Of a stretch of DNA of 32,907 nucleotides, positions 8,734 through 32,907 are shown in pieces. The notes under the pieces are model-generated. The model saw only the letters and a list, made by a program, of their open reading frames with translations. It was not told the origin of the DNA and ran no database searches. The DNA is from Macrostomum lignano (Eukaryota), in NCBI GenBank assembly GCA_002269645.1, contig NIVC01004866.1, forward strand, positions 1 through 32,907. Direction: 5' to 3'. Each line of letters starts with the position of its first letter. The first letter of the stretch is position 1. The translations under genes were made by a program, and so were the position numbers.

Positions 8734-9330
8734 TGGCTTGATCGTCTGCAAAGAGTAGGATGAGTGGGAAAGCAGATCTCGTAAGAGAGCGCCTAGCGCT
8801 AGAGAGTTCAAGATATTCAACAATGTCGTCAATATATAGTTCAAAAAGAATGGTAGAGAGAGGGTTGCCTTGAAGAACACCTTTAGATATTGGGATTGGC
8901 TGGGTTTCATCATCATCATCATCTTTTTTTAGAATGAAGCAGGCATTTTTATGCATGTTCTTGATAAGTTCCATCATTTGACCTTTAATACCCTGATTAT
9001 CCGTTTTGCACCAAAGGGTCGGTTGATTTAAGCTATCGAAGGCTTTTTCATATTCAACAAATCCAATAAAGAGTTCTTCTTTGTTGTAGATGGATTGGTT
9101 TATAATGTTGTAAAGATTAAAACATTGGTCGATTGTGCTGTGATTGGGCTTGAAACCGTATTGGTATTTTGATATAAGATTGTTTGCGTATGCTAGGTTT
9201 TCGAGTCTGGATTTAATAATTTGGCAAAAGAGCTTGCCAAGAATTGGTTGAATGCAGATTCCTCTGTAATTGTTGGGGTCGGCACTGCTGCTGATGGATG
9301 ATGTTCAGCCAAATTTGAAAAAAATATTTA
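8734..9330 (-). mobile_element. LINE reverse-transcriptase domain fragment (CR1/L2/RTE-like)
   Basis: Minus-strand translation: DPNNYRGICIQPILGKLF...QYGFKPNHSTIDQCF...FVEYEKAFDSLNQPTLW...KGVLQGNPLSTILFELYIDD...LFADD. It is truncated immediately after the FADD motif. Confidence 0.9.
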
Positions 9331-9791: not shown

Positions 9792-9995
9792 TGTAACACG
9801 CGGTATTTGGCAGCACCAAAAACACGAAGGCCCCGGCCGTGAGGCAGTGATCGCTTTATTTATGCAAGTTGAAGTTAAGCCTGCGATGTACATAGAGAGC
9901 GAACGTACATTAAATCAATACGATGATTCAGCTAATTATTTGTCACGATTGCTAACAGTTCAGACTGCCTCTAAGGCAAGGAATAAAATATTACA
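9792..9995 (-). repeat. 3' LTR (204 bp)
   Basis: TGTAACAC...ATATTACA. It differs from the 14263-14462 LTR by 3 substitutions and one 4-bp indel. Confidence 0.96.
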
Positions 9996-10007
9996 TTTCT
10001 CCCCCAC
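9996..10007 (-). other. Polypurine tract
   Basis: GTGGGGGAGAAA on the minus strand directly abuts the 3' LTR. Confidence 0.9.
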
Positions 10008-10135
10008 AAAAGGAGCATAGCAACAGGGAATAAAAAGATGAGAGTGAAACACAGCTAGCGAAATGTAGAGTAAAAAGAGGAACGCAGACTGTAATATACA
10101 TTTCAATCACAGTCTCTGACAGTCCATGGCCTCAG

Positions 10136-13100
10136 TCACTCAGCGCTCACACCGAGGTAGTCCGGAGGACGCCGCACCCTGGCCGCGGGTACCGCCGCTC
10201 GGCCTGGCTCGACTCCGGGGCGACCTCGTGGGTCACCGGCTGCTCGCGGAGCTGCTCCGCATCGGCCTGGGCTGCGAGCCGCCTGCGCAGCCGGTTCACG
10301 TGCACCCAGTGGACCGGCCGAATGCCGAAGGCGCGGCGGATGCGCACCGAGTGGCCGCGCTGCTCGAGCACCGTCCAGTCCGGCTCCCAGTACGGCGCCA
10401 GCTTCGATCGCCGCATCTCGATTCTGAGCAACACCTGGGTGCCTTGCGGAAACTGCGGCAGGTCCGACGCCTTCTTGTCGTGCGCCGCCTTCTGTTGCTG
10501 TCCGGCGGTCACCAGGTTTTCCTCAACGAACTCGTGGATGCGGGCCAACCGACGCTCCAGCAGCGCCGAGTAGGTGCCGATGTCATACTGCTGCTCGCTG
10601 GCCTGCACCTGCGGTGGAAGCTGCGGGTCGCGGCCGGTCATCACAGTCAGCGGCGTCACCTTGGTTGAGCTGTGGACCCTGGAGTTGTAGGACAGGACCA
10701 CCAGCGGCAGCTGCTCCTCCCAGCTGGACTCGGTCTCGGTGAACAGCCGCAGCAGTTGCAACAGCGACTTGTTGCCGCGCTCCACAAGGCCGTTTCCCTG
10801 CGGATGGTAGGGCGATGTGCGCGTCTTCCTGATGCCCAGCACTCGCAGCGTCTCCTGGGACAGCTCGCTCTCGAAGTTCGCGCCCTGATCCGAGTGGATG
10901 ACCGATGGGACTCCGAATAGCGAGAAAACCTTGACTGCAGCGTCCGCGATGGTCTTGGCAGTCTGGTCTGGCATCGGCATGGCGGTCAGGAACTTGGAGA
11001 ACTGGTCCTGCATCACCAGCAGGTATAGCTGTTGCCGCGGTCTGACAGCGGCACCTTCAGCACGTCGATGGCCACAGTCTGCCAGGGCTTGCCGATCGGC
11101 ATCTCTCCAAGTGGGGCCGCGGGGCGCTGCTGCGCCTTCTTTAGCTGGCAGGTCTGGCACTCCTGGCAGAAACTCACCACGTCGCTCTGCAGTCCCGGCC
11201 AGTACGCGGCCTGCTTCAGCGTATCGGCCATCTTCTCTGGCCCGAAGTGGCCGCCGATGCCTTCGTGGAAGTCGGTCAGGAACTGGCGCCGCAGCGACTC
11301 CGGAATCACAGGAACGTCTCTCGGTCCTGCGGCGTCGTTGAATGCCCGGCAGAGAAAGCCATCTTGGATCCTCAGCTTCCGCCAGATGCGGCTGAGGTGT
11401 CTCAGGCTGGTGTCCGACCATCTTGGTGGAGTCGTGCTGTCCTTCTCCAGCGCCGCGAGGACCAGCTTGAGCTTCGGATCGGCAAGTTGCGCCTGCCGCA
11501 TCTCCTGATTGGACACCTTCGGCTTTAGCTCCGTTGCCGACGCTCCGATCACCTCGCCGTGGCTTTCGTGCATCCTGGACAGGCCGTCCGCCTCCACGTT
11601 GTCGACGCCCTTGGTATACTTGATGGTGAAGGCGAACTCCTGCAGCAGCAACCGCCAGCGCCCAAGCCGGCCATGGCTGTCGACCCGCTGAGAATTCAGA
11701 AACGTGAGTGGGCAGTGGTCGGTGAAGACCGTGAAGTGCCGGCAAGCAGGTAGTGCCTGTAGGTCTTCAGGGCGTGCAGGATAGCCAGGCACTCCTTCTC
11801 GACAGTTGAGTAGCCCTTCTCCGGTGCCGTAAGCGCTCTGCTGCAGTACTCAATCACCTGGTCTCCTTGCTTGAGCACGATGCCGACTCCGGTGTTGCTG
11901 GCATCCGTGTAGAGCTGGAACTCCTTGGAGAAGTCCGGGTGGCCGATGATCGGCGGCTGCTGCAGGGCCTCCTTGAGACGTCGGAATGCCGTGCCGCACT
12001 CGCTGGTCCACTCGAACTTCTCTGTTTTGCTCGTCAGTCTGTGCAGCGGCCCGGCGATGTCGGAGAAGCTCGGCACGTACTTCCTGTACTGGTTGCAGAG
12101 GCCAGGAACTGCCGCACCTGCGTTGGCGAATGCGATATCGGCCACTCCTGGATAGCGCGCACCTTCTCAGGGCTCACGGTGGCACCCTTGGCCGAGAACA
12201 CGGTGCCGAGAAAAGTGACCTCCGGCAGGCCTAGCTGGCACTTGCGCCTCGGACGGTGAGCCCAGCGCCTCTGATCTTCTCGAAGACTTCTCGCAGGTGC
12301 CGGAGATGCTCAGCCTTCGATCTGGAGAAGCACAGCGTGTCGTCCATGTAGGTGAAGGTCTGCGCGGCGCCTTTGAACACGCGGTTCATTAGGATGGTGA
12401 ACGAGCTCGGGCCGCCGCAGACGCCCTGCGGCATCCGCTTGAACTGGTACAGCGGCTTTCCGGGCCCTGGGCTGAAGGCCGTCTTCTGCTTGTCTTCCGG
12501 CTTCATCGGAATTTGGAAGTAGCCGCCGTTCAGGTCGATCACCGAGAAAATCTCGTTGCCAGCCAACTTGTCCTTGACGAAGTCCATCTGCGGAATGCCC
12601 TGCGCTGACCGCACCGTCTTCTTGTTCAGCTCGCGGTAATCGATCGTCAACCGCAGGTCACCGTTATTCTTCCGCACGTACACTGGAGTCGCCACGTACG
12701 GGCTGTCCGACTCCTCGATGACGTCATTGTCCAGCAGCTCCTGAATCAGCTTCCTCACCTCGGGCTCCCAGTGCACCGGAGCTTCCTCGGCGGGATCCGC
12801 ACCGGAACATCGTCAGTCAGCGGGATGCTGTGCTCGTGTCGATCCGTCAGCCCTGGCCGCCTGGTGAAAATGTCGCTGAACTCGCGCACCAAAGCTCGGA
12901 TGTCCGGGTCCTCCGCGACTGGCAGGTCGATCTTGGTGAAATCCGGCACCAGCTTCTCTTCAATGTCCTCGAGCTGACTGTCAGCATCGAGGTGACTCAT
13001 GCCGTTGATCACACAAGAGTCCTTTGATGGGGTCTCTGCTGCACTGTCGCTGAAGTCCAGGCACATGTTGCAGGCCTTGATGAAGTCCAGCCCGATGATG

Positions 13101-13480
13101 ACGGCAGCAACCAGACCTTCAGACACGTAAAACGGGTGCCGCCGCTCGATGCCGCCGAGCGACACTGCCAGGCTGGCCACCTGCCGCACCGGCACCGCTT
13201 GCTGGTTGACTGCCCGCAGCTCCAGGTGCACGCTCTCCAGCTGAGCTGGCCGCATGCTCTGCAGAACCCGCTTGTCCACGATTGACACCTGGCTGCCTGA
13301 GTCGATAATCGCCGTGACGTCCACGCCTCCGATCCTGCACTGCAGCTTGGATGTCGCCGAGTTCGGCCTGATGACGACAGCTGCTGCGCTGCTGCTGGCT
13401 GCACCGCTCCCCTCTGCGCCCAGGAACAACCCACTCACGCTGGGGCCCGCGCTCAGAACTGGCCAGGGGTGCGGGCTCTG
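10136..13480 (-). CDS. pol: Pol polyprotein (aspartic protease, RT, RNase H, integrase), broken by several 1-2 bp indels in this assembly
   Basis: Motifs IIDSGSQVS (PR), YMDD (RT), YTDAS (RH), HEGIGGHFG...CQECQTC (IN zinc finger) and SDQG...NGLVER (IN core). The stop at 10136 is inferred from the frame preserved in the duplicate. The 5' boundary is approximate. Confidence 0.88.
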
Positions 13481-14243
13481 CCCCGGCCTGTGCCGTATCC
13501 CGGCGGATGATTGCAGTTCCTGGCGATGTGGCCGCGGCGGTGGCAGTTCCAGCAGGTCACCTCGCGCTGTCTCCTCGCACTGCGAATCGCGCAGGAGTCC
13601 GAAACCTTTGAGCCCAGCTTTGCCGCCAGGTCTTGGACCGTCGCCTGCAGCGAGCTGACCGCAGCCCTCAGTTCTGCCGTCTCCGCGCTGCCTGCAGCTC
13701 CGGCTGCCGCTGCAAGAGGCTGCTTGAATCCGTCCGTGGTGGCAGAAGGCAGCTCCAGTAGCAGTTGTGCCCGTGCGAGAGCGTCACTCACGGTCTTGGC
13801 TGACGCGTCCGCTCTGATCTGCTTGCTGATGTCCACCGGCAGTCCGCGATGAACTGGTGAGTCAGCATGGTGGCCGTTGCGCCTGCCTCGCTGATGCCAG
13901 CGTCCTTTAGCAGCTGCTTCAGGTGATAGAGAAAGAGCCGAGGAGATTCGCCCGGCAGCAGCTTCCGGCTCTCGAATGCATCCAGCGCTGAGAATTGCTG
14001 GCTGTCCGGGTGAAATGCCTGGCTCAGAGCTTTGGTCACTTTGCTGTAGTCGCTCTTGCTATTCTCGTCGAGCTCAAGAAAAACAGCCAGAGCCTCACCA
14101 TCCAAAAACGTTGGCAGGTGCAAATGCTTGTCATTTACCCACTTGTTGGCTGCCGCGCACAGCTCAAACCGCTGGAGCCACTCCTTAAAGTTGCCTGAGC
14201 TGAACGCCCTAGGAATCGCACGGTGACTGCCACCATCTGCCAT
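13453..14243 (-). CDS. gag: Gag with CCHC zinc knuckle (one frameshift near 13845)
   Basis: The ATG at 14243 gives MADGGSHRAIPRAF...WLQRFELCAAANKW, and the C-terminal piece has CWNCHRRGHIARNC. Adding one G restores QFIAGLPVDISKQIR. Confidence 0.85.
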
Positions 14244-14249
14244 AGTACA

Positions 14250-14260
14250 CTCTGCTACCA
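14250..14260 (-). other. Primer binding site complementary to tRNA-iMet 3' end
   Basis: TGGTAGCAGAG lies 2 nt inside the 5' LTR boundary. The eukaryotic initiator tRNA-Met ends ...CTCTGCTACCA, an 11-nt match. Confidence 0.9.
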
Positions 14261-14262
14261 CT

Positions 14263-14462
14263 TGTAACACGCGGTATTTGGCAGCACCAAAAACGCGAAG
14301 GCCCCGTGAGGCAGTGATCGCTTTATTTACGCAAGTTGAAGTTAAGCCTGCGATGTACATAGAGAGCGAACGTACATTAAATCAATACGATGATTCAGCT
14401 AATTATTTGTCACGATTGCTAACAGTTCGGACTGCCTCTAAGGCAAGGAATAAAATATTACA
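14263..14462 (-). repeat. 5' LTR (200 bp)
   Basis: Direct repeat of 9792-9995, bounded by TG...CA and followed by the TSD CATA. Confidence 0.96.
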
Positions 14463-15196: not shown

Positions 15197-15470
15197 AAAT
15201 CTGCATTCAATTTCGGCAAACTGGCATCAGCTATATGGCCGCACATCCAAACTGCATTGGAATTCGACAAACCGAGAACCAATTTCGGCAAACTGCATCC
15301 AATTTCGGCAACTCGAGTTTCTATTTAGACAAACTGATATTCAACTTCGGCAAACTGCATTCAATTTCGGCAGACAGCGCCTCGTGACACAGACTGTCTA
15401 TGTAAATAGGTACGCATCTATACCCAAAACTGATTTTCAATTTCGGCAAACTGCACTCAATTTCGACAGC
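15197..15470. repeat. Degenerate 20-bp tandem/clustered repeat (AAACTGCATTCAATTTCGGC), about 10 copies
   Basis: AATTTCGGCA recurs at 15281 and 15301 (20-bp spacing), with further copies at 15201, 15341-15371 and 15428-15466. Confidence 0.75.
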
Positions 15471-17893: not shown

Positions 17894-18259
17894 TTAAATA
17901 ACTATACTAAACAAATTTGTTAAAAAAGTTAATCGACTGCGGCTTTTTGATTCATCTCTAATTTGAACAGTTTACAGTGTTGCTCGTTGCTAATCGCGAT
18001 TAAAAGTGAACGGTGAACATACTTTTCTGACAACAAGAATTTCTAATCACGAAAACGAAGAAAAAAGGAATATAATATGTATGGTTATTGTATTAATAAA
18101 TAGTTCGTAATAATTGGTAAGTTCGCAATTATTAGTAGTTATATCGCGACCAAAGTACGCCTGAGGCAATACTTAAGGGACAAAAAAGAACAAAGAAACT
18201 TCATGGACTAATATTTGCTTATCGTTAAATAGGCAAACAAGACTATTATAATAACAGCA

Positions 18260-19951
18260 TCATTCAACGTCAGATACACGTACTTCTTCAGGGAGCTGCT
18301 TTTCTGAGCCTTGAATATCTTTGCGTTGTCCTTGCGGATCACCCAACTGCTGAGCGCTCGATACTTTGGTCTTCTTCCTGCCAAAGGAGGCGATGTCGAA
18401 GATGAGCTCGAACAGCTCGCACAGGGTGAGCAGAGACATTCCCAGGTAGATGCCCATGATGCCGCCGACGTCCGAGATGAAGTTCTGCAAACCGTAGTCG
18501 ATCGAGAAGTTCATCCGATCGCACAGAACTCGATGCGGCTTGAAGTGCACTTTGAGCATGTTGCTGCGGATGTATGAGGACACGATCGACTCGTTTCCGT
18601 TCACGACGAGGTCGAGAGCCGGAACACTCAGATTCTTAGACTTGGCCCTCATCCAAACAGGTTCGATGGAGCTGCTGACGAACGGCATCATTGAGCTCTG
18701 AGTGGGCCAGTCGGAACTGGAGATGGTCGCGCTGTACTGCAGTGTGCTGCAAAGTCGCTTAGCTTTACATGCTTCTTTCGATATTCCGTCGAACTGAGTG
18801 GTGAGAGGTTCCAGAGATGGGTCGCTAAAAAATACCAAGAAGTTTGGATCACCTGTAAGGTTAAGTGCGAACTTCTTTCCACGCAGAGGCCACGGAAGAG
18901 GACCGGCATCGCTTGACAGATTGACGAGCTGCTGCATCTGTCGGTGGAACTCGTAGTAGAAGCAGTACGAGTAGCTGTACGAGTGCTTGTATGGAGTCTC
19001 GTCGTACGGGTTCACGAACTGAACGTCCGGCGGGTCGCTCAGACAGTCGAACTGACCAGCCTTGTACACCTGCTGCGTCATGTCGATCTCGACGGTGTGG
19101 GACTTTCCGGGTCCAAGCGAGAACGAGCTCACGAAATCGGACGGATACTCACCTGGAGGCGTGAGGAACACTTTCACACCTGCTTGTCTGTCGGGTCCGT
19201 TGTAGTCGGCGACATCGAGCGACCAGTCGGACACAGGAATGAGAGTTCGTCCTGCGTACACCATCTTGCGGATCGAGTGTCCGCTCGATGCGAGTCCTTG
19301 GAACGCCGAGTCCGTAACCAGGGTGACCACAATGCCGGATGATGAGCCGGTCTGTTCAATCTGTTGTTGCCACGTGCTGTTCAGAGTCCACTTGAGACAG
19401 CGCAAGTACATCGGATGGTAGAAGGTCTGCGCTTCGATGGGCGCATACTGGGCCATTCCAAATAGCTTAAACTTGAAGTCACTCGTGATGATGCTCTGTT
19501 CGTTTCGGTGAGCCAGAGCATCAATCAACAGCTGATATGATATTGACTGAGGATAAGCACGGGATAGCCTCATTTCTTGGGGTGTAGTTTCTGTTAATCC
19601 GTTTATTTGCAATCCCCGCCGTAGGACGGTTTGAGAGCTATTGAGCTGATCGTTGATTGCAGCAGCCGATGCCTCATCAATAGTAGCAGAGTAGCTGCCA
19701 GAGATCGGGTTCTCGAAACAGGCGTACACATCCGGGAACTGGAAGTTGAGACTGTTTCCATCAAGCGAGCTGGTGACCTGCCGAGACTGCAGCTTGACAA
19801 CGAATTGGTAGAATCCGTAAAAGAAGAGTCCCGACATCAGCAGCATCAGGATGAGCCAGAAAGCTCGCACAACCAACGGTTTGCTGCTCACTACTCTGGG
19901 CAGTCCGTGCGCTGAGGTGGAAGACATGGCTTCCTTGATCGGCTGCAGCAT
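18260..19951 (-). CDS. DEG/ENaC (amiloride-sensitive sodium channel family) subunit, paralog A, 563 aa, single-exon CDS
   Basis: N-terminal TSAHG motif, TM1 (AFWLILML...), FPDVYAC, AGVKVFL/SLGPGKSHTV palm motifs, and TM2 ISDVGGIMGIYLGMSLLTLCE with the GxS filter. Confidence 0.93.
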   Translation of the reverse strand: MLQPIKEAMSSTSAHGLPRVVSSKPLVVRAFWLILMLLMSGLFFYGFYQFVVKLQSRQVTSSLDGNSLNFQFPDVYACFENPISGSYSATIDEASAAAINDQLNSSQTVLRRGLQINGLTETTPQEMRLSRAYPQSISYQLLIDALAHRNEQSIITSDFKFKLFGMAQYAPIEAQTFYHPMYLRCLKWTLNSTWQQQIEQTGSSSGIVVTLVTDSAFQGLASSGHSIRKMVYAGRTLIPVSDWSLDVADYNGPDRQAGVKVFLTPPGEYPSDFVSSFSLGPGKSHTVEIDMTQQVYKAGQFDCLSDPPDVQFVNPYDETPYKHSYSYSYCFYYEFHRQMQQLVNLSSDAGPLPWPLRGKKFALNLTGDPNFLVFFSDPSLEPLTTQFDGISKEACKAKRLCSTLQYSATISSSDWPTQSSMMPFVSSSIEPVWMRAKSKNLSVPALDLVVNGNESIVSSYIRSNMLKVHFKPHRVLCDRMNFSIDYGLQNFISDVGGIMGIYLGMSLLTLCELFELIFDIASFGRKKTKVSSAQQLGDPQGQRKDIQGSEKQLPEEVRVSDVE

Positions 19952-20042
19952 AAATGTTTCTGGTTGCAGTTTCTGGGTTCCAGATTTAGTCTCGCATTTA
20001 CTGCTCGTAGAGAAGTTTTAGGTCGACAAACTTATCAGCATG

Positions 20043-20050
20043 TATTTATA
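20043..20050 (-). promoter_or_regulatory. Candidate TATA box of paralog A
   Basis: TATAAATA on the minus strand 92 bp upstream of the ATG, in the same 10-mer (TATAAATACA) as the 29687-29696 promoter. Confidence 0.4.
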
Positions 20051-20726
20051 CAACGATACTGTACTGCATTTCTAGGATAGCAAGTCTGAGTGGCGATTCC
20101 CATTATTACGAGCGAAGATTTCTGAATCGCTTCTAGACTTGCTTTTCCACAATGGACTGTCAAGGGCCTTTATGTATTGGCCAGGTCTGGATGCGTTTTC
20201 ATTTTGGTTAATTGATTAATTAATGTGGTCCCCTTGTCGAGTATCTATGCCATTGTTAGCAGCTTGATTGTGCCCAGTCCGAAAGCAGTAGACTGCTTGA
20301 GTGGTTATAGGTACTTTGGATATTTTTGGCACAAAATACACCCTAGTTTCCATTCCATTTCGATGCCCTACAAATATAGTACTTTTCACTGGATTGCTGT
20401 CCACTGAGAGAAATAACTCAGCAAACATGGTATTGTGCTTCAGACCCACTTTATATAATTAGTATTTGTGACCGCTCCGCCAACCGTCAATTATCAAATA
20501 AAGAGAGCAAAAATTATTCCAGAGAGACATATCTGGTATTTCTACACACAAATCTATATTCTTGTATATATATGAAGGCTAAGACTAATCTTATCTCGTA
20601 CTTGTCTACCAATAGAGAACAATTGTCAGATGCAGGTAGCCACTGGGAAAATAATTGGCTATTGTCAACGCTAAACATTCGCACTCACATGTACGTGAAC
20701 AGTAAAATTTACTCAAGAGTCAAAGC

Positions 20727-20732
20727 TTTATT
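20727..20732 (-). terminator. Candidate polyadenylation signal of paralog B
   Basis: AATAAA on the minus strand about 30 bp after the stop codon at 20764. Confidence 0.4.
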
Positions 20733-20763
20733 GCACAATGGATACGTTGCTGCTGATGTTTAA

Positions 20764-22488
20764 TTATTCGGGAAGATCTCTTGACGATTGATGATTAGTC
20801 AATGCTGCCACACCAATCTTGTTTGTTACTCCACTTGTGTTCGAAGGTCTCCATTTTTTTAAGCTGACTGAGACGATGTCGAAGATAAGCTCGAACAGCT
20901 CGCACAGGGTGAGCAGAGACATTCCCAGGTAGATGCCCATGATGCCGCCGACGTCCGAGATGAAGTCCTGCAAACCGTAGTCGATCGAGAAGTTCATGCG
21001 ATCGCACAGAACTCGATGCGGCTTGAAGTGCACTTTGAGCATGTTGCTGCGGATGTATGATGACACGATCGACTCGTTTCCGTTCACGACGAGGTCGAGA
21101 GCCGGAACACTCAGATTCTTAGAGTTGGCCCTCATCCAAACAGGTTCGATGGAGCTGCTGACGAACGGCATCATTGAGCTCTGAGTGGGCCAGTCGGAAC
21201 TGGAGATGGTCGCGCTGTACTGCAGTGTGCTGCAAGGCTTCTTGGTTTTACATTTAGCGTTTGTTACTTTAGCAAACTGCTCCATGTTATAATTTGCTTT
21301 GTAAAATATCAAAAAGTTTGGCTCGTCAGTAAAATTCGTGACGAACTTTTTTCCACGCAGCGGCCACGGAAGTGGTCCGACAGCGTTTGACAGATTGACG
21401 AGCTGCTGCATCTGTCGGTGGAACTCGTAGTAGAAGCAGTACGAGTAGCTGTACGAGTGCTTGTACGGAGTCTCGTCGTACGGGTTCACGAACTGAACAT
21501 CAGGCGGGTCGCTCAGACAGTCGAACTGACCAGCCTTGTACACCTGCTGCGTCATGTCGATCTCGACGGTGTGGGACTTTCCGGGTCCCAGCGAGAACGA
21601 GCTCACGAAGTCGGACGGATACTCACCTGGAGGCGTGAGGAACACTTTCACACCTGCCTGTCTGTCGGGTCCGTTGTAGTCGGCGACATTGAGCGACCAG
21701 TCGGACACAGGAATGGGAGTTCGTCTTGCGTACACCATCTTGCGGATCGAGTGTCCGCTCGATGCGAGTCCTTGGAACGCCGAGTCCGTAACTAGGGTGA
21801 CCACAATGCCGGATGATGAGCCGGTCTGTACGATCCTTTGTTGCCACGTGCTGTTCAGAGTCCACTTGAGACAGCGCAAGTACATCGGGTGGTAGAAGGT
21901 CTGCGCTTCAGCGTCCTCGAAGTCAAGCATTCCGTAGTTGCTATTGAACTTTATGTCGCTTGAAATGACTGCCTGTTCGTGTCGGTGGGCCAGCGCGTCG
22001 ATTAAAAGTTTGTAAGATATCGACTGTGGAAAGACACTTGTAAAGTATTTTTTAAAATGTTTTGTTTCTCTGTCCAATTTTTTTAACTCGCGCGTTAGGG
22101 CAAAGTCGAAGCTGTTGAGCTGATGATTGATTGCAGCAGCCGATGCCTCATCCACAGTCGCAGAGTAGCTGCCAGAGATCGGGTTCTCGAAACAGGCGTA
22201 CACATCCGGGAACTGGAAGTTGAGGCCATTTCCTTCAAGCGTGCTCGTTACCTGCCGAGACTGCAGCTTGACAGCGAATTGGTAGAATCCGTAAAGGAAG
22301 AGGCTCGACATCAGCAGCATCAGGGTGAGCCAGAAAGCTCGCACAGCCAGAGGTTTGCTGCTGACAATTCTCGAGAACCCATGGGCCGAAGTTGAGGCCA
22401 TGGCCATCTTCAACTGTTGTTTCATTTTGATTTGAGAATAACTCGTACAGTTTTTTTGCAATATGAGCTTGAGTTCCTTTCGGTTCAT
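20764..22488 (-). CDS. DEG/ENaC subunit, paralog B, 574 aa, single-exon CDS
   Basis: Same motifs as paralog A (TSAHG, FPDVYAC, ISDVGG...GMS) in an uninterrupted ORF. The finger, thumb and tails are divergent. Confidence 0.93.
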   Translation of the reverse strand: MNRKELKLILQKNCTSYSQIKMKQQLKMAMASTSAHGFSRIVSSKPLAVRAFWLTLMLLMSSLFLYGFYQFAVKLQSRQVTSTLEGNGLNFQFPDVYACFENPISGSYSATVDEASAAAINHQLNSFDFALTRELKKLDRETKHFKKYFTSVFPQSISYKLLIDALAHRHEQAVISSDIKFNSNYGMLDFEDAEAQTFYHPMYLRCLKWTLNSTWQQRIVQTGSSSGIVVTLVTDSAFQGLASSGHSIRKMVYARRTPIPVSDWSLNVADYNGPDRQAGVKVFLTPPGEYPSDFVSSFSLGPGKSHTVEIDMTQQVYKAGQFDCLSDPPDVQFVNPYDETPYKHSYSYSYCFYYEFHRQMQQLVNLSNAVGPLPWPLRGKKFVTNFTDEPNFLIFYKANYNMEQFAKVTNAKCKTKKPCSTLQYSATISSSDWPTQSSMMPFVSSSIEPVWMRANSKNLSVPALDLVVNGNESIVSSYIRSNMLKVHFKPHRVLCDRMNFSIDYGLQDFISDVGGIMGIYLGMSLLTLCELFELIFDIVSVSLKKWRPSNTSGVTNKIGVAALTNHQSSRDLPE

Positions 22489-23547
22489 TTGTCGCTTTTA
22501 AATCGTCTCGCAACAGTATAGTGGGTGGTGTGCTGTTTGACGAACTAATGGCGTTTTGTTTGGCTATTTTTTGAGTGGGAAGTACACTGCTATCGCTTAA
22601 ATAGTGCAACTGATCTATAAAGCGCTGGAAAAGACTTCTGAAATTGTATCTTGGGAAAATACGAGAATTATTTAAAATGACTATGGGGGCTTTGGCTATG
22701 GAAAAATTTAAAGGTAAGAATTAATCATTACAGCACATCAGTGACAGTGTTAAAGCTTTTATCAAGTTTCAGCTGCACGCTGATATGTCAATATTTGGTG
22801 AGCTTTTCGATTTAACGTATTATTGCTTTTCCGTTTGCTTGGCCAGCCGCTCTTAGCAAACTGTAGCTAATTGCTGCTGCCAAAAGTGACTTGTTATTTG
22901 AGTGTAAATTCCTGCATTGCTATCTATTAAAAGCTTCCCTCCATCGGACGCAACCAGCAACCAGGTAAAAAGCTTTTTATTTGACAGGCAGCACACAGCT
23001 TAAGCTGATGGAAAATTATTAGATTGGGGGAAACTGAGGGATGAGACAAGACAGGGGAGAGGGAAGATAAAAGAGGAGAGGAGATTAGAGAAAAAGAGCA
23101 CGCTTTTTCTATTGTAAAAGCAAACTCAACAACGGAATTAATAATCTTTGCGCACTCGTGTCTAGATCGTTGCTGCACTCAAAAGCCGTGCACCATGTCT
23201 CCACTGGTGAACGCCCGAAATGTTTGTATAGTCTAAAGCAGACAGTTTGAAGAGTTAGCAGTCACACCAAACGTGTGACTGTCAACAATTATGAATGAAA
23301 TTGATCTTGAAATAGATGGGCGCTTCGAAGTTTTGGCGGGGCGCTAAAAATCAATGACTATACTCACCGACTCTATAGGACCGCCGAAACTAAATAGCCA
23401 GAAGTAATAAAATACGACTTGTAAACTCACTACGGTCAACTTTACTAAACAATCGAAGATTGTGCCTGGTTTTGTTTGGGCCACAAACGATTGCGTCGAC
23501 GGAAATTGTGAACTAAGTAAATTTTTGCGCGCCTTTCAGGCATCGAA

Positions 23548-23672
23548 ACAGGAATACAACAGATTGCTTATCTGCGAATAGTCTATGGTCAAGCCGCCCT
23601 CCATCTTTGGATATTCCCAACGGTTATATTTGGATATACCCATTTGCAGATGAGCAATCTGTGTATTCCTGT
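23548..23672. mobile_element. Small MITE-like element with ~31-bp imperfect terminal inverted repeats
   Basis: ACAGGAATACAACAGATTGCTTATCTGCGAAT (23548-23579) is the inverted match of ATTTGCAGATGAGCAATCTGTGTATTCCTGT (23642-23672). No clean TSD. Confidence 0.6.
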
Positions 23673-25186
23673 ATCAATGCGTTTGCAATGATATTTTTTA
23701 TTCGATACAACAAAGCTGAATAAACAGATTACGAAAACGGTAACACAGCCTGCAGCACAGCAGTATCCATTGCGGATACGTCAGCCGAAGAAATATCTTT
23801 AGACGTTACACTCACATCGGCCGAATTGCATGGTTTGTTCCGCATGGGATCCTCGGGGTAAGCCTCTTCTTCGCTTGGCAGTGGTGGCAGAGCATCATCG
23901 TTACCGCATTCAATGAATCGGATGAACTCCATCAACTCTTAGTCATCCGCCTCGTCACGTCCACCCATACTCAAGTCGCTGAGAAAGTTGACCTCATTTC
24001 CATTCAAGCCGTCAATGCTTTCAATCGGCAAATTCGACCAATTTATCATTCGTATGAGTGGCATGAATAGAGGTTAGGGCAAACAGGAGAAACAGGAACA
24101 TGTATCCTCTGCTGCAGAGTTCCAGCTTATAAGACCACAACTTCATTTAACATGTTTCGTCTATGGTAATTTCAGACTGTTCCGCTTAACTTTTCGTTCC
24201 AGACGTTTATTCTATGGCCATCATTTGGCTTGCACCAAGTGGAAAATGCCTATGACACAAATCCCTAGAATCGCTTAGTGAACAATTCCCGTCTGGGAAG
24301 TTGTGTCCTAGCCGTTTTGAATTGGTTTTTTGGACGAAAATAGACACAATTCCACTATCGAGAGGTCACGCTTCACACACAACTGCCATAGCGTCGAGGC
24401 CGGTAGGTTCTCCTCCTTGTCCTCGTGTTTTCTATGTAAGAAAGGTCAAATATAGCGTATAATCTTTGCCTGGTTCTGGCCATAGACATTGTGCAGCATT
24501 TGCAACAATTTGGCTTTATTGGTGTACCCCTAAAAACCCCATTCAAAATGATAGTCGTACAATGATCTACGAGTTTTTGCAATCAAAAAACTACTCAAGT
24601 ATCTGCGGTATCTACCGAGTTTAAAAAATATCGAAGTTAAATTCAATCGTGGTGTTGCTTCCTTTTACAGTAAATAATAGGAAACCCATTTCGGCCACAA
24701 TAGCATTATTTGCCGGAATTGTTAAATGTAGATTGTGTTGTGTTTTTAGTTATAGTGAAGTTCACGTAGACTCTCAGGTCTCGCTTAATATGTTTATACT
24801 CATGCGCGTTGACAACAGTGTTACGCAGTCAAACGAACGATACTCATAATTGAACGCACGATGCATATAAGGTAATTGAACAGCCATGTATACATTCTAG
24901 CCCCAAAGTTAGTCAGTTAGTTAAAACACTTGGACCCGATATGGACAGTTACTACAGATTGTGTATATGGTTGCTAGCCGGCTGGGATCCTTTTGCAGCA
25001 ACCGCATATGTCATGGTCATAAAATATAAAGGGAACCATAACAATCTACGAGATGCCCTTTTCCAGAAGTTATAGCAATACTAAGGTTCAGCCGCTACAC
25101 TGATTGCTGCAGGAAAAAGGGAAAATACGAGTACATGCTGACATTGCTCATAATATACGAACGTACACACACCTTTCTCAAACAGA

Positions 25187-25333
25187 TGTCATAGCTGCTC
25201 GAAAGCCTGCGGTCCTCCTCTTCCATGGCTTGTCCTTCTTTAGCAGTTTGATGAGGGGCTCCGCAAGCCTGGAGAGGCTGGGAATGAAGTTGCCAATGTA
25301 CTTCACGAAACGAGCCACTTCCTTGGCTTCAGT
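25187..25333 (-). mobile_element. Short Ty3/gypsy pol remnant (RT thumb/connection region) of a second family
   Basis: Minus-strand translation TEAKEVARFVKYIGNFIPSLSRLAEPLIKLLKKDKPW matches the gypsy motif FIPxLSxxAxPLxxLLKKD..W. Confidence 0.7.
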
Positions 25334-25705
25334 ATTTTTGAATTGGTCAACATATTATTCTTCAATTTCAAAAAATCATCAAAAATTCCAAGAAAGATCT
25401 ACCTGAAGGCAGCCATCAAAACAAAAATTTATCACGATAAAAATATTAGCAACAACAACAAAAACAAAATGCGCACGCCGTTATTGGGCCGCACTTCTAA
25501 AACAGTCAGGTCCCCCAGTCAGAGTCAGAATAGGGGCTCTCGCATCCCTCAGAAGCAGCTCGGAGTAGGTGATGAGGTCAATCGCTCATCTTTCAGAAGT
25601 CAATGGGATCAAATTCTTGCACGCTTAATCCAACAAATAAAACGCGTTTATTTACTACTGTTGTAGGATATTTCAACGCCATGTCAGATTAAAAAAATCT
25701 TTAAT

Positions 25706-27424
25706 TCAAGGCTCGCTTGAGATGCTGCTGATGCTGAGGCTCTTTGTAGACTGTTTTGGCGGCGGCGCGTGACTCTTTTTTCTGACTCCCAACTGCTGGA
25801 TTGAAGAAGCTGCCGGCTTGGAGCTTGACGCTCTTGCTTTCTTCCTGCCAAAGGAGGCGATGTCGAAGATAAGCTCAAACAGCTCGCACAGGGTGAGCAG
25901 AGACATTCCCAGGTAGATGCCCATGATGCCGCCGACGTCCGAGATGAAGTCCTGCAAACCGTAGTCGATCGAGAAGTTCATCCGATCGCACAGAACTCGA
26001 TGCGGCTTGAAGTGTACTTTGAGCATGTTGCTGCGGATGTATGAGGACACGATCGACTCGTTTCCGTTCACGACGAGGTCGAGAGCCGGAACACTCAGAT
26101 TCTTAGACTTGGCCTTCATCCAAACAGGCTTGATGGAGCTGCTGACGAACGGCATCATTGAGCTCTGAGTGGGCCAGTCGGAACTGGAGATGGTCGCGCT
26201 GTACTGCAGTGTGCTGCAAAGTCGTTTAGCTTTACATGTCTCTTTCGATTTTACGTCGATCTGACTGGTGAGAGGTTCCAGAGATGGGTCGCTAAAAAAT
26301 ACCAAGAAGTTTGGATCACCTGTAAGGTTAAGTGCGAACTTCTTTCCACGCAGAGGCCACGGAAGAGGACCGGCATCGCTTGACAGATTGACGAGCTGCT
26401 GCATCTGTCGGTGGAACTCGTAGTAGAAGCAGTACGAGTAGCTGTACGAGTGCTTGTATGGAGTCTCGTCATACGGGTTCACGAACTGAACGTCCGGCGG
26501 GTCGCTCAGACAGTCGAACTGACCAGCCTTGTACACCTGCTGCGTCATGTGGCATGTGACCACGTCAGGTGTGGGACTTTCCGGGTCCCAGCGAGAAAGA
26601 GCTCACGAAATCGGACGGATACTCACCTGAAGGCGTGAGGAACACTTTCACACCTGCCTGTCTGTCGGGTCCGTTGTAGTCGGCGACATTGAGCGACCAG
26701 TCGGACACAGGAATGGGAGTTCGTCTTGCGTACACCATCTTTTGGATCGAGTGTCCGCTTGATGCGAGTCCTTGGAACGACGAGTCCGTAACCAGGGTGA
26801 CCACAATACCGGATGATGAGCCGGTCTGTACGATCTTTTGTTGCCACGTGCTGTTCAGAGTCCACCTGAGACAGCGCAAGTACATCGGATGGTAGAAGGT
26901 CTGCGCTTTGATGGACACATATTCGGCCATTCCGTAACCTGTTTTAAACTTGAAGTCACTCGTGATGATGCTCTGTTCGTTTCGGTGAGCCAGAGCATCA
27001 ATCAACAGCTGATATGATATTGACTGAGGATAGGAACGTGAGAGCGTCATCTCTTGGGTGTAGCGTCCATTGATCCGTTTCTTTGAAGTTTTCGCCGTAG
27101 GAGTGTTTGAGAGCCAATGAGCTGAGCGTTGATTGCAGCAGCCGATGCCTCATCAATAGTAGCAGAGTAGCTGCCAGAGATCGGGTTCTCGAAACAGGCG
27201 TACACATCCGGGAACTGGAAGTTGAGACTGTTTCCATCAAGCGAGCTGGTGACCTGCCGAGACTGCAGCTTGACAACGAATTGGTAGAATCCGTAAAAGA
27301 AGAGTCCCGACATCAGCAGCATCAGGATGAGCCAGAAAGCTCGCACAATCAGCGGTTTGCTGCTCACTACTCTGGGTAGTCCGTGTACTGATGTTGAAGC
27401 CATGGCTTTCTTGACTTGCTGCAT
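25706..27424 (-). pseudogene. DEG/ENaC paralog C, disrupted
   Basis: Full-length homolog. It has a 1-bp homopolymer loss near 27055 (possible assembly error) and a 10-to-17-bp replacement at 26551-26567 that introduces an in-frame TGA and a frameshift. Confidence 0.85.
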
Positions 27425-28296
27425 GCTTGATTTTTCTGGGTTTTAATTTTTTGAATGCGAAGCTTCCTCTCTGACCGGGATGACTTGCTATTTTTGTGAT
27501 GCTTTTTTAACCATTTGGCGATCGCCTCCGTTCTTCGCCCCCCGGCGGACGGCTCATTGTGCATTGTCTGATCGCATATCTATGTAAAGTACATTGCTCA
27601 ATGCTCAATATCGGCACCGAACAAATCTTCTAAATAAATATTATGGCTCCGCCCATGTGGAGGCTTTGAGCTTTTTCTACATTTTTTAACTTTCTTTTTT
27701 CGTCGGAGTCCGCCATTCATTTTCGCCACTGCTGTACCACTCACATGAAAATCAATTCTATTGAACTTGAAAGTGACTGGTCATACGCAGACAAGTCTGC
27801 TGAAGTTAAAATATGGGTTGCATTGTAACACTGCAACTATTTACTCAGCTAGACGTTGCTCACAAAAAATACGAACGTATTGTACAGCACCTTTTACAAA
27901 CAGATGCCATTGAAACAGACTTAGTAAAAGGCTTTTTGGTATAGAGAAAGTGCATTTTGCTGGTTGAAGCCACATAAACGCATTGGAAGCAGGGCAAACG
28001 ATAGAACCTTAAATCAATACTCTTTTGGAACAAATGGTTTCAAAAAGATCCCACTGAATTATGGATATGCTATGAAAATTTGCTGTGCTACTGCAAACGC
28101 ACTGTGTAAAATTAAAATCAACTATTTATCAGAGAGCGAGAGTTGTGTCCATCAACTTGGGAAGAGAGCCAAAGCGATTTTGGGAGTGTTTGTACAGCTT
28201 AGAGATCGCGATTTATGAGTAGCAGCCAAAATTAAATCTTAGCAAAGTTTTGAAACACTGCATTATAAGTGCAGCACACTAGAGCTCTGAAGAAGA

Positions 28297-28568
28297 ATGC
28301 AGCAAGTACTGGATGCCACAGCATCTTCCGAAACAGACCGACTGTCACGGGTTGGAAGCAAGACGCTGTACGAGCGTATATGCGATTGGAAACAGGTGGT
28401 GGAAACAGGTTGAACTTCCAGTTTTCCTGTAAGCTTTTTGTTATGAGAACCCGATCTCTGGTAGCTACTCTGCGACTGTGGATGAGGCATCAGCCGCTGC
28501 AATCAATGCTCAGCTCAGTGGCTCGCAAGTTGTAATGAGGCGAGGCTTTCAATGCTTGGGTACGTCAG
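28297..28568 (+). pseudogene. Inverted DEG/ENaC 5' fragment (paralog D) lacking TM1
   Basis: MQQVLDATASSETDRLSRVGSK aligns to MQQVKKAMASTSVHGLPRVVSSK. After a deletion spanning TM1, 28445-28528 matches C 27107-27190 at 75/84 nt, mostly at synonymous sites. Confidence 0.8.
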
Positions 28569-29390
28569 TGTTACGTTTTCTACTTCAACAATTATTACAT
28601 CCTCAAGGCTATCATCGGACATAAAAGTATAAGTCGAAGAAGCTTTGTTTAGAGTACCGCGATTCACGGCTTATATTTGCCTCTAACGAGCTCACACAGA
28701 TGATTGTTCTTTGCGGTACTGTAGTATTCGGCTCTTAAGGTAATAAAAGGTCCTACCCTAGACAATAGACATGCAGAGAGAACTAAAGTCCGTTTAGTTT
28801 TTGTCTATACACAACATTCCCCTTTGTCAATATTTTTTCTCCGGATCTGCATGCTTTAACTATACTGTAGGCGATCCGATTTCTCAGCTTGCTTCGATCG
28901 CTCAGTATCCTTGTAGGCTCTCCTCTGGTCCCGCCTGAGATTCTCCTCGGCTTGGGACGTCTTAGACCCGCTGAGTTGATTCACTCTCTCGCCGCTCTTT
29001 CTCGGTAGTAGTTTGGTCGCTCTGAACTCTCCTAGGATCCTCCAGAATAGTTCAGAGAGTAGTTCAAATGATAGATGACGAGCCTGGACACAACGGTTTG
29101 TTGTGTCCAGGTAATTCTGCTCTGACGATTTGGTCGACGTGTCGCTTCCAGGCTTGTCCGTTGACCAACAGTGCGGACGATCACCTTGGCAGAAATCCAC
29201 CTATTCTCTCGCTCCCTTCTGAAGTCCAACGTCAGAACTGAGTCTCCTTGGATGCAACCGACGCAGAGTTGAACAATAAAGATTGGAGTCAGGTGAATGA
29301 AGAGCTGTCTTTTCATGAGCTGTAGCTCGCATACAAGCTAGACCGCTTGCTCCCTCGAGCTAAGACTTAAATTGGCGCAGTACTGCGCTT
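28569..29390 (-). mobile_element. Decayed 3' end of a Ty3/gypsy element (integrase C-terminus, PPT, probable 3' LTR 28569-28816)
   Basis: The minus strand has QGDSVLTLDFRRE..NRWISAKVI (SH3-like integrase tail) and ERSKQAEKSDRLQYS*. A PPT-like AAAGGGGAA (28817-28825) is directly followed by TGTTGTG, and the putative LTR ends ...GTAACA at 28569. There is no second LTR to confirm the boundary. Confidence 0.55.
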
Positions 29391-29662
29391 TGCAATGTGC
29401 TTTTCTGTTCTGATCTCTGTTTACGTTTTTATATTTTTCACTGCATTTGTTTTGTATTTTCTTGTTATTTTTCTATTATATATTCAGCAGTTAAGAACGT
29501 GTATCTTTTTTTCAACAGCTTACCAGCATCAAAATTTATCAGCACAAAACTTCTTAGTCTGTAGAATTTTCTTTAATTGATTATTGAATAAGAGCAAGGC
29601 GGTGGTTCATTCAGTTATTTATCAACGGTACTTAGATCAAAGAGAAAACAAGGGAGAGTGAG

Positions 29663-29922
29663 TGATTTGTTTCACTGCCGCCGCCGTGTATTTATAGCTT
29701 TGTTATTGTCTTCCGGAAATTTCTAGAAAGATTTAGCTAATTTTAAAAAAGCGAAATAACCCTTTAATTATATACATTACGTAAATATAATTAGAACATT
29801 AATACTTAAGTGATAATTAATTATTTACTATTTATATGCGTATGTTATAAATTAGCTGCTAACTCAAAGAAGTTTCTGGAAATAGTTTTTGACTTTTAGA
29901 AATCTGAAGAAATTTCGGGAAA
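29663..29922 (-). promoter_or_regulatory. Heat-shock-type core promoter: three perfect HSEs, TATA box and Inr-like start
   Basis: 4-unit HSE at 29710-29729 (TTC/GAA/TTC/GAA at 29711/16/21/26) and 3-unit HSEs at 29868-29882 and 29908-29922. TATAAATA lies at 29689-29696 (minus) and TCACTC near 29663. Confidence 0.7.
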
Positions 29923-30896
29923 GTCATTAAAGTACGCTACAAGTCTATTTTTTGTCCTGAGAAAGGGCACATAAACTGCATGTGCCGCTGTCCAATATTG
30001 GATAATCTACTGCGATGCATTAGGCTGTAGTATTGAAGTATTGAATTTACATTTAGCAAAACGTCATGACGTCATTCGTGATCTACATGTACAAATCGCA
30101 CACAGTGAATCAAATCACGGAGTACATTTGCTCATCATGTAAAGTAAATTAAACGAGAAAGTAAATTCACTTAGGCAAAGTAAATTAACCTGCTGAACGC
30201 ATGGTGCCGGCTAGGCAAATTACCTTTCAGCAGTAAATTTGCTCCCAGGAAGATTTTGCGGGAGAATAATTTGCCGAAATTTACTTCACCAGCGCAGCAG
30301 CGGCGTCAGTTAATTTACGTTAATAAACGTTAATCGCGTGACGAAATTTATTATTGTTTGAAAGTTAATTAACCATTAAGCTACATGTATTAGTTATAAC
30401 CCTCAATATTAACCCTCGTTTTAAAGGGGCAATAAAATTTTGTGCTGAGAAAATAAAGACTTCCTGTCTACGTAGTGTATTTTTCGGCGAAAATTGGCCT
30501 TCAAAACTTTTTCCGTGAAACGTGATCCTCGCTTCCTGCATATACGCTGCTTGTCCTAGTCTAAGCAAGGCTTAACCTGTTCGGTTTAGAGCTAAATAAA
30601 AAATTCAAGTTCGAATTTCTGAAAAGGCATTATGAATGACGAGCATTTCTAACCAGGACAAAGAGGAAAAGAGAACAGATTATCATGTGCAGCTATTTTA
30701 ATGTTAATAGAAGTTTGTCATTAACCCTTATTTTGTATCGCCTCAAAAGAACCGGCAAAGCTATACTCGTACTCCAGGAAAGAAGAGAACTAAATAATTG
30801 ACTAATATTTGCATATTGCTTGAGATCTGCATAACAGTACATGTACTATTACAATAATAGCTTCCTTCAACAGCAGATACTTCCTCACGGAGGATG

Positions 30897-32562
30897 CTAT
30901 TCTGTGCACTGATTATCGCTACTTTGTTCTTGCAGATCACCTAGCTGCTGAGCGCTCGATACTTTGGTCTTTTTCCTGCCAAAGGAGGCGATGTCGAAGA
31001 TGAGTTCGAACAGCACGCACAGGGTGAGCAGAGACATTCCCAGGTAGATGCCCATGATGCCGCCGACGTCCGAGATGAAGTCCTGCAAACCGTAGTCAAT
31101 GGATCGCAAGTTCATCCGAAGTGCACTTTGAGCATGTTGCTCGATGCGGCTTGAAGTGCACTTTGAGCATGTTGCTGCGGATGTATGAGGACACGATCGA
31201 CTCGTTTCCGTTCACGACGAGGTCGAGAGCCGGAACACTCAGATTCTTAGACTTGGCCCTCATCCAAACAGGTTGGATTGAGCTGCTGACGAACGGCATC
31301 ATTGAGCTCTGAGTGGGCCAGTCGGAACTGGAGATGGTCGCGCTATACTGCAGTGTGCTGCAAAGTCGTTTAGCTTTACATGCCTTTTTCGATTTTACGT
31401 CGATCTGACTGATGAGAGGTTCCAGAGATGGGTCGCTAAAAAATACCAAGAAGTTTGGATCACCTGTAAGGTTGAGTGCGAACTTCTTTCCACGCAGAGG
31501 CCACGGAAGAGGACCGGCATCGCTTGACAGATTGACGAGCTGCTGCATCTGTCGGTGGAACTCGTAGTAGAAGCAGTACGAGTAGCTGTACGAGTGCTTG
31601 TATGGAGTCTCGTCGTACGGGTTCACGAACTGAACGTCCGGCGGGTCGCTCAGACAGTCGAACTGACCAGCCTTGTACACCTGCTGCGTCATGTCGATCT
31701 CGACGGTGTGGGACTTTCCGGGTCCAAGCGAGAACGAGCTCACGAAGTCGGATGGATACTCACCTGGAGGCGTGAGGAACACTTTCACACCTGCCTGTCT
31801 GTCGGGTCCGTTGTAGTCGGCGACATTGAGCGACCAGTTGGACACAGGAATGGGAGTTCGTCTTGCGTACACCATCTTGCGGATCGAGTGTCCGCTCGAT
31901 GCGAGTCCTTGAAACGACGAGTCCGTAACCAGGTGACCACAATGCCGGATGATGAGCCGGTCTGTTCAATCTGTTGTTGCCACGTGCTGTTCAGAGTCCA
32001 CTTGAGACAGCGCAAGTACATCGGATGGTAGAAGGTCTGCGCTTTGATGGACACATATTCGGCCATTCCGTAACCTGTTTTAAACTTGAAGTCACTCGTG
32101 ATGATGCTCTGTTCGTTTCGGTGAGCCAGAGCATCAATCAACAGCTGATATGATATTGACTGAGGATAGGAACGTGAGAGCGTCATCTCTTGGGGTGTAG
32201 CGTCCATTGATCCGTTTCTTTGAAGTTTTCGCCGTAGGAGTGTTTGAGAGCCAATGAGCTGAGCGTTGATTGCAGCAGCCGATGCCTCATCAATAGTAGC
32301 AGAGTAGCTGCCAGAGATCGGGTTCTCGAAAACAGGTGTACACATCCGGGAACTGGAAGTTGAGGCTGTTTCCATCAAGCGAGCTGGTGACCTGCCGAGA
32401 CTGCAGCTTGACAACGAATTGGTAGAATCCGTAAAAGAAGAGTCCCGACATCAGCAGCATCAGGATGAGCCAGAAAGCTCGCACAATCAGCGGTTTGCTG
32501 CTCACTACTCTGGGTAGTCCGTGCACTGATGTTGAAGCCATGGCTTTCTTGACTTGCTGCAT
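30897..32562 (-). pseudogene. DEG/ENaC paralog E, disrupted
   Basis: Full-length homolog with homopolymer indels near 32330 and 31933 (possible errors). A templated duplication/replacement at 31098-31141 breaks the frame before TM2. Confidence 0.85.
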
Positions 32563-32761
32563 GCTTGGTTTTCTCGTTTTAATTTTTTGAATGCGAAGCT
32601 TCCTCTCTGACCGGGATGACTTGCTATTTTTGCGATGCTTTTTTAAGTAGTTGGCAATCGCCTCCGTTCTCCGCCCCGGCGTACGGCTCAGTGTACATTT
32701 CTGATCGCATTTTTATGTAATGTACATTGCTCAATGCTCAATATCGGCACCGAACAAATCT

Positions 32762-32805
32762 AGAACTTTCTAGAACCCCTAGAACTTTCTGGAACATTCT
32801 AGAAG
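32762..32805. promoter_or_regulatory. Heat-shock element array (perfect 3-unit plus perfect 5-unit nGAAn inverted repeats) upstream of paralog E
   Basis: GAA/TTC/GAA at 32763/68/73 and GAA/TTC/GAA/TTC/GAA at 32782/87/92/97/32802, 200 bp upstream of the ATG at 32562. Confidence 0.75.
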
Positions 32806-32907
32806 CTTACTATGTGGGTATATTTTGAGGGTGGTGCGTGCGATCTTGAGAGACTACTTTTCATGATTGTTGCTATCGAAGACAGATCAACTACATGGAT
32901 CTCTCTC

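Follow-up and report, generated by a model that had tools for sequence, protein, structure and literature searches.

Are the DEG/ENaC channel genes on contig NIVC01004866.1 of Macrostomum lignano (GenBank assembly GCA_002269645.1), which we analysed over positions 1 to 32,907 of its forward strand (the window), under heat-shock control? Inducible hsp70 loci (e.g., Drosophila 87A/87C) are intronless, have tandem or inverted copies that undergo concerted evolution, and carry proximal heat-shock elements (HSEs). An earlier note on this DNA had seen a similar combination in the channel array, and proposed regulation by heat shock factor (HSF) as the design of the channel genes. We examined the anatomy of the array, the statistics of its HSEs, the family membership of its copies and its transposon context, and the proposal is not supported for the intact genes, A and B: their HSEs do not exceed chance, and the perfect HSEs lie by pseudogenes, outside the repeated unit. 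We think it probable that the locus is a young tandem array of DEG/ENaC paralogues that lack introns, set in DNA rich in transposons, and that two self-contained heat-shock promoters, probably derived from long terminal repeats (LTRs), stand beside its two dead copies.

Perfect heat-shock elements form two clusters outside the duplicated unit

A search of both strands with the perfect three-unit HSE pattern (GAAnnTTCnnGAA) found eight matches in the window, where shuffles of the window gave an expectation of 0.31; when only the AT-rich intergenic DNA of the array was shuffled, the expectation was 0.13. All eight fell in only two clusters, the first at 29711-29728, 29869-29881 and 29909-29921 and the second at 32763-32775 and 32782-32804, and both clusters adjoin pseudogenes (copies C and E). 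The earlier report of perfect HSEs distally upstream of C and upstream of E was borne out, as these are far above chance. That the HSEs arose by chance or are a plain microsatellite was ruled out by the count of 8 versus 0.13-0.31 expected, by a perfect array of five units, and by a TATA box at canonical spacing in both clusters; the canonical HSEs appear to be genuine, functional-looking HSF sites.

Neither HSE cluster is part of the duplicated gene unit, because the homology of C and E stops at 27628/32761, one base short of E's HSE array. From the coding sequence (CDS) up to that point C and E are 95% identical, and E's array starts at the very next base. The 5' flank of C that is common to E (27425-27628, minus strand, corresponding to 32563-32761) has no HSE, and beyond 27628 the flank of C is unrelated sequence that is free of HSEs for 2.1 kb. 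Upstream of the ATG, A has only ~12-15 bp in common with C and E, and the upstream sequence of B has nothing in common with them. The array thus resembles hsp70 loci in its intronless CDS, tandem copies and gene conversion, and in two modules that have an HSE, ~14 nt and TATA layout; it differs from them in that hsp70 HSEs are inside the duplicated unit of every functional copy, whereas here they are outside the unit and the functional copies are without them.

Cluster 1 lies in an LTR-like unit

Cluster 1 (29711-29921) is laid out as HSE, 14 nt and TATAAATA. Its proximal HSE of four perfect units (TTCtaGAAatTTCcgGAA, 29711-29728, minus strand) is 14 nt upstream of the TATA box of this promoter, contained in TATAAATACA at 29687-29696 of the same strand, and its two distal perfect three-unit HSEs are at 29869-29881 and 29909-29921. 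Judged by this layout, cluster 1 looks like a complete minus-strand promoter on its own, and transcription from it would begin near 29665, which puts the start 2.2 kb upstream of C's ATG (the TATA box is 2.26 kb from that ATG, and the HSEs are 2.1 kb from pseudogene C). As to a gene downstream of it, we found no Pfam domain in the minus frames of 27430-30960 and no coding periodicity by GC content at third codon positions (GC3) between cluster 1 and C.

We noted that the three HSE sites of cluster 1 (four overlapping regex matches) and TATAAATA are contained in a 382-bp unit (29560-29941, minus strand) that has the termini TGTAG...CTACA and is flanked by a 4-bp target-site duplication, AGTC (29556-29559 and 29942-29945). 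In the manner of an LTR, the unit combines TG...CA termini that include a short inverted repeat, a 4-bp duplication, and canonical HSEs upstream of a TATA box. LTRs of this kind are known in M. lignano: those of Mag, CsRN1, Gmr1/Osvaldo and copia elements have one to four canonical HSEs upstream of TATA (Ustyantsev et al., Mob DNA 2025, PMC12801592), and the HSE-bearing families show >250-fold heat induction, the HSEs being required in a reporter assay (PMC12801592). Cluster 1 is like them in that its HSEs are just upstream of TATA within a few hundred bp bounded by TG...CA, at similar spacing (~12-14 nt; 14 nt in both of our clusters versus ~12 nt in the LTR promoter of Mag ID206, which has been validated). 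It is unlike them in that the clusters of the window have no homology to Mag ID206 beyond the HSE motif, and the boundaries of cluster 2 are out of view. ONSEN, a Ty1/copia element of Arabidopsis, and Helitron1_CE of C. elegans are likewise HSE-carrying transposons able to spread heat-responsive promoters to the neighbourhood of host genes (PMC12801592); these belong to other element classes and hosts, and the window has an LTR-sized unit, not a full element.

Our best reading of the 382-bp unit is that a solo LTR, or a mobile promoter of a similar kind, was inserted into the C-E spacer. We also considered it as the 5' LTR of the truncated element that lies immediately downstream of it (described below), and rejected this: the two are non-homologous, they start with TGTAGC and TGTTGTG, respectively, and no primer-binding site comes after the unit.

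Cluster 2 points out of the window

Cluster 2 (32758-32809) consists of a perfect three-unit HSE (32763-32775) and a perfect five-unit HSE (32782-32804) with imperfect flanking units, and was reported by TRF as 4.7 copies of a 10-bp unit. Its TATA box, TATATTTTGA (32819-32828, plus strand), is 14 nt past the last GAA of the cluster and would drive transcription out of the window. The HSE, 14 nt and TATA (TATTTTGA) layout of cluster 2 exists on the plus strand only, directed away from E. Comparison of the two clusters with each other, and of each with the rest of the window, found no homology beyond the motifs, and cluster 2 has none to the Mag ID206 LTR beyond the HSE motif.

The intact genes have no heat-shock elements beyond chance

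Neither A nor B has as many as three contiguous inverted nGAAn units in its own promoter. By the same measure C has no array within 2.2 kb, and E has one ~200 bp upstream of its ATG, outside the duplicated unit. There is no perfect HSE upstream of A, and the sole candidate there is a one-mismatch HSE, GAAgaTTTctGAA, at 20114-20126; B has a one-mismatch HSE, GAAaaTACgaGAA, at 22655-22667, and in both the mismatch hits the middle TTC unit. Stand-alone one-mismatch HSEs number four in the window versus ~11 expected, and the probability of at least one in 400 bp is ~0.1 per promoter. The degenerate TTC/GAA runs that the earlier note had listed at A could not be upheld as HSEs, since the one-mismatch site is at chance density and the remaining runs are out of phase. 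Its three-unit HSE with one mismatch at B is present, but likewise at chance density and with a defective middle unit.

Gene A does have a probable core promoter in the TATA 10-mer TATAAATACA (20041-20050, minus strand), 90 bp upstream of its ATG. As had been pointed out before, A shares this 10-mer with cluster 1: the only copies in the window are those at 20041-20050 and 29687-29696, which lie on the same (minus) strand, against an expectation of 0.02. However, A's TATA region and cluster 1 have no wider homology around it, and two good TATA boxes suffice to account for the sharing. Because the real HSEs are in self-contained promoters beside dead copies, A and B, as far as their sequence tells, are without a sign of heat-shock control.

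Four DEG/ENaC copies, two of them intact

By self-comparison, the window has near-full-length copies at 18242-19963 (A), 20870-22362 (B), 25837-27628 (C) and 30969-32761 (E), arranged head-to-tail and all on the minus strand. Copies A (18260-19951) and B (20764-22488) are intact single open reading frames (ORFs) of 563 and 574 residues with no interruption; the homologue of A's start codon in B is probably the ATG at 22425. Copy C (25706-27424, minus strand) is a pseudogene in three ORF pieces, which has lost one base near 27059 and gained 7 bp near 26567. Copy E (30845-32562, minus strand) is a pseudogene as well: it has one extra base near 32332 and lacks one near 31934, and an insertion of 10 bp near 31131, a local duplication, shifts the frame ahead of the second transmembrane segment (TM2), so that TM2 is lost. 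The 1-bp indels of C and E could be assembly errors because they are located in homopolymers, but the 7-bp and 10-bp lesions are not attributable to homopolymer assembly error. The 10-bp insertion belongs to a local duplication (31105-31135) that repeats the ...NMLKVHF... coding segment.

The description of all copies as single-exon CDSs therefore applies to A and B, which are uninterrupted ORFs, and not to the frameshifted C and E. Tandem clustering likewise stands for A, B, C and E but does not extend to fragment D (28439-28528, plus strand), an inverted 90-bp bit of the DEG/ENaC N-terminal region with 86-88% identity to A, C and E.

Membership of the DEG/ENaC family, also claimed earlier, was confirmed by full-length matches of both intact genes to Pfam ASC (PF00858; curated cut-off 23.6 bits): A matched with 147.8 bits (E-value 6.6e-43) and B with 163.7 bits (E-value 1e-47), each over model positions 3-455 of 455. 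Both proteins have the N-terminal HG motif (AHG at residues 14-16 of A), two hydrophobic segments (residues ~26-44 and ~500-518 in A) and a G-M-S filter within TM2 (LGMSLL). The nearest PDB chains to A and B are FaNaC, ENaC-beta and ASIC, with matches essentially in the TM1 and TM2 regions and a best E-value of 5e-10. Thus A and B are like the family in the full-length ASC domain, HG motif, two TM segments and G-x-S filter (GMS), and differ from it in a very divergent ectodomain and in having only 8-9 cysteines. Between A and B the ratio of nonsynonymous to synonymous substitution rates (dN/dS) is 0.36, and we therefore conclude that both are under purifying selection. By these features A and B appear to be ordinary yet very divergent DEG/ENaC subunits, and presumably encode subunits of trimeric Na+ channels.

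Gene conversion and the intron-poor state of the subfamily

We observed that identity between copies jumps between neighbouring 100-bp windows, from 52-65% up to 97-100%. In the A/B comparison, windows of 54-65% are adjacent to windows of 97-99%, and in A/C tracts of 100% lie beside tracts of 82%. Overall, C is 94% identical to A and 95% to E, and B, also a mosaic, matches the other copies at 87-88% on the DNA level. The best database relative of the window copies, M. lignano protein P0001 (UniProt A0A1I8GD92), is an unlinked paralogue that is a mosaic too: residues 293-524 are identical to C (100% over ~230 residues), and the N-terminus has only 74% identity. (The name 'acid phosphatase' that P0001 carries in its source is wrong, as the protein is DEG/ENaC, PF00858, over its full length.) Exact-protein look-ups for A, B, P0001 and the N-terminal ORFs of C and E gave no records. 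Because identity is mosaic in this way, including between P0001 and C, we attribute the near-identical and divergent tracts to gene conversion between copies, and the partial homogenisation, or concerted evolution, that had been proposed for the array is real.

Intronlessness had been proposed as an hsp70-like hallmark. A and B are intronless, and a single-exon CDS of 1.7 kb is atypical for M. lignano because its genes have an average of 5 introns (PMC5730564). However, the one further family member whose locus we compared, a distant paralogue with 38% identity, P0002 (locus L001, GCA_002269645.1 NIVC01004250.1), is near-intronless too, with one intron of ~75 bp, and the 21.5 kb of its locus contain no perfect HSE. 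Because this HSE-less paralogue is also near-intronless, the intron-poor state is not tied to HSEs; it is an old trait of the subfamily, perhaps of retrogene origin, and not a heat-shock adaptation.

The 489-residue model of P0002 is truncated at its N-terminus (L001 9000-11700): in the DNA upstream of it, MLQL...TSAHG and the TM1 region are encoded in different frames, so that a frameshift, either real or an assembly error, lies right after the HG motif. Its intron is at the equivalent of the junction between GKSHT and VEIDM, the same place as C's 7-bp insertion.

Published heat-shock expression

The sheet of up-regulated genes in preprint Table S2, from RNA-seq of M. lignano heated to 37 C for 2 h, includes at least four PF00858 transcripts with mild induction (log2 fold change [log2FC] 1.6-3.2, base means 3-24). 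These are MligTCv3c-562.7397 (log2FC 1.63), MligTCv3c-562.1695 (2.97), MligTCv3c-562.9342 (1.59) and MligTCv3c-6151.0 (3.22). In the same experiment Hsp70, Hsp90 and the HSE-LTR families reached log2FC 8-14, and ~1100 genes were up-regulated (preprint Table S2). This mild induction keeps alive the idea that DEG/ENaC copies have been co-opted by HSE modules, without backing a canonical HSF-driven design.

Transposon context and other features of the window

Because it contains the 3' end of a 5'-truncated LTR retrotransposon (28531-29250, minus strand), the C-E spacer is transposon debris. This end comprises an integrase C-terminal remnant (29250-29112, in two frames; pol stop at 28856), a polypurine tract (28817-28825), and a 3' LTR of 286 bp (28816-28531, TGTTGTG...CATTACA) that directly abuts fragment D. 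The ORF at 29032-29316 matches protein P0007, which tblastn places on 29250-29112 in two frames (E-value 7e-15). P0007 is the end of pol on contig L002 (Logan SRR31628435), a single contig of 2.3 kb on which a polypurine tract and an LTR come after the integrase end, and then gag, which has two CCHC knuckles, and protease; the polypurine tract and LTR start in the window align with it (AAAGGGGAA joined to TGTTGTGTATAGAC). The start of the LTR, TGTTGTGTAT, resembles that of the heat-induced Mag ID206 LTR, and there is no HSE in it.

An intact-looking Ty3/gypsy LTR retrotransposon occupies 9792-14462 (minus strand), with protease, reverse transcriptase, RNase H and integrase in broken frames, and no HSE. 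Its LTRs of ~200 bp (9792-9996 and 14263-14462) are 96.6% identical and have the form TGTAAC...TTACA; the element is flanked by a 4-bp duplication, CATA, and 2 nt separate its 5' LTR from a primer-binding site of the TGG type. Both its terminal style and the length of its duplication match those of the 382-bp unit. A protein search with its integrase found distant gypsy matches only. A second, truncated copy of this element with its flank makes up 1-3695 (1-424 versus 8812-9236, 99.1%; 425-3695 versus 9798-13072, 99.8%), and has arisen either by segmental duplication in very recent time or as an artefact of assembly; it is ended at 3696 by satellite. The satellite covers 4.4 kb (3699-8126) with ~193 copies of a 23-bp unit, TGTTTGACATGGTGGCTCTTTAA, at ~81% identity, and has strong strand asymmetry (GC skew +0.25, AT skew -0.35). 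In the otherwise featureless spacer downstream of A there is a 21-bp tandem repeat of ~6 copies with 69% match (15248-15372).

In the B-C spacer, Pfam searches of all frames of 22900-25700 found nothing significant. A pol-like peptide picked out by eye at ~25100-25400 (minus strand) was confirmed neither by Pfam nor by tblastx against the 9792-14462 element, and we do not claim it. Rfam and tRNA scans of the whole window gave no matches, and a protein search with a 114-residue ORF found nothing.

Origin and targets of the two promoters

The reading that we prefer is as follows. Gene conversion keeps blocks of the array copies near-identical, C and E are decaying, and D is an inverted scrap. 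Two modules, each made up of an HSE array, 14 nt and a TATA box, stand outside the duplicated gene unit, and both most likely come from HSE-bearing LTR retrotransposons of M. lignano; alternatively, cluster 2 may be part of a neighbouring heat-shock unit past the window edge. On heat shock, HSF would fire both modules, with possible read-through or bidirectional transcription over C and E, and A and B would be driven by their own HSE-less promoters, A's with a TATA box. HSF binding, the direction of transcription and the LTR origin of both modules are what we infer from their sequence.

Several points weigh against this reading. The test of the termini and duplication of the 382-bp unit was post hoc, and its P ranges from 0.14 to 0.002 by the criteria chosen: in simulations, a TG..CA candidate with a duplication surrounded the HSE core by chance with probability 0.14 if any TG..CA within 1200 bp was accepted, 0.021 if it had to be within 600 bp, and 0.002 for TGTA..TACA within 600 bp. 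The unit has no homology beyond the HSE motif to the Mag ID206 LTR, the sole family sequence compared. At cluster 2, the break of homology has no TG/CA terminus, and the window ends 98 bp past the cluster, so that its target lies out of view. E's ATG is only ~200 bp from cluster 2, HSEs work in both directions, and there is a weak CATAAAAAT on E's strand ~45 nt downstream of the cluster. The intergenic DNA of the array has three stand-alone one-mismatch HSEs, and two of them are within 400 bp upstream of A and B (estimated nominal P ~0.015). Finally, the heat-induced PF00858 transcripts described above must be counted on the same side.

Could the modules simply be host promoters, cluster 2 for a heat-shock gene beyond 32907 on the plus strand and cluster 1 for a heat-inducible non-coding RNA or a gene since lost? 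We regard this as unlikely. It would fit with the canonical HSE, 14 nt and TATA layout of both modules, with the direction of cluster 2 out of the window, with the lack of homology to the Mag ID206 LTR (one HSE-LTR compared) or between the clusters, and with a cluster 2 breakpoint that has no TG/CA terminus. However, cluster 1 is bounded by TGTAG...CTACA and a 4-bp duplication, it lies among retrotransposon remnants, and no coding domain follows it; moreover, HSE-bearing LTRs and solo LTRs are documented in the M. lignano genome (PMC12801592).

A further alternative, which we judge distinctly improbable, is co-option, in which HSE modules of whatever origin make the adjacent DEG/ENaC copies heat-inducible, here the dead C and E and elsewhere intact copies of the C/E type such as P0001; transposon promoters would then have placed part of the family under HSF. 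Cluster 2 is ~200 bp from E's ATG and cluster 1 is oriented like C, several PF00858 transcripts are mildly induced, and solo LTRs of HSE families are mentioned for two host genes with mild induction, at a distance of up to 2 kb (PMC12801592). Against this, no intact copy in the window has an HSE, the published PF00858 transcripts may come from other loci, and with ~1100 genes up, chance or indirect effects may account for the few family members among them.

That the whole array, including A and B, is an HSF-regulated locus in the style of hsp70, in which intronlessness, tandem arrangement and concerted evolution serve heat induction, is very unlikely: real HSEs do lie inside the array, A has a TATA box and each intact gene a one-mismatch HSE within 250 bp upstream, an intronless 1.7-kb CDS is atypical against 5 introns per gene, and mild induction by heat (2 h, 37 C) is listed for at least four PF00858 transcripts, but the one-mismatch sites are at chance density with the middle unit defective in each, the perfect HSEs are tied to pseudogenes only and are outside the repeated unit, cluster 1 with its own TATA box is 2.2 kb off within a transposon-like unit, the distant HSE-less paralogue is near-intronless as well, and the DEG/ENaC log2FC of 1.6-3.2 (base means 3-24) compares with 8-14 for heat-shock proteins and HSE-LTRs.

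On the reading that we prefer, with the modules as LTR-derived promoters beside dead copies, the locus extends a phenomenon known from M. lignano by one or two probable LTR-type promoters that bear HSEs, and canonical HSEs beside genes in this genome can be transposon cargo, not gene regulation. As a long shot, HSE-LTRs may have been captured by members of this fast-evolving DEG/ENaC subfamily, with some intact C/E-type paralogues elsewhere in the polyploid genome being HSF-inducible and C and E being decayed examples; if true, such LTR capture would account for the mild heat induction of several PF00858 transcripts. Transgenesis and heat-shock reporters exist for M. lignano, which makes co-option directly testable, and if it holds, this family would be a tangible example of ion-channel genes that transposons have connected to the heat-shock response.

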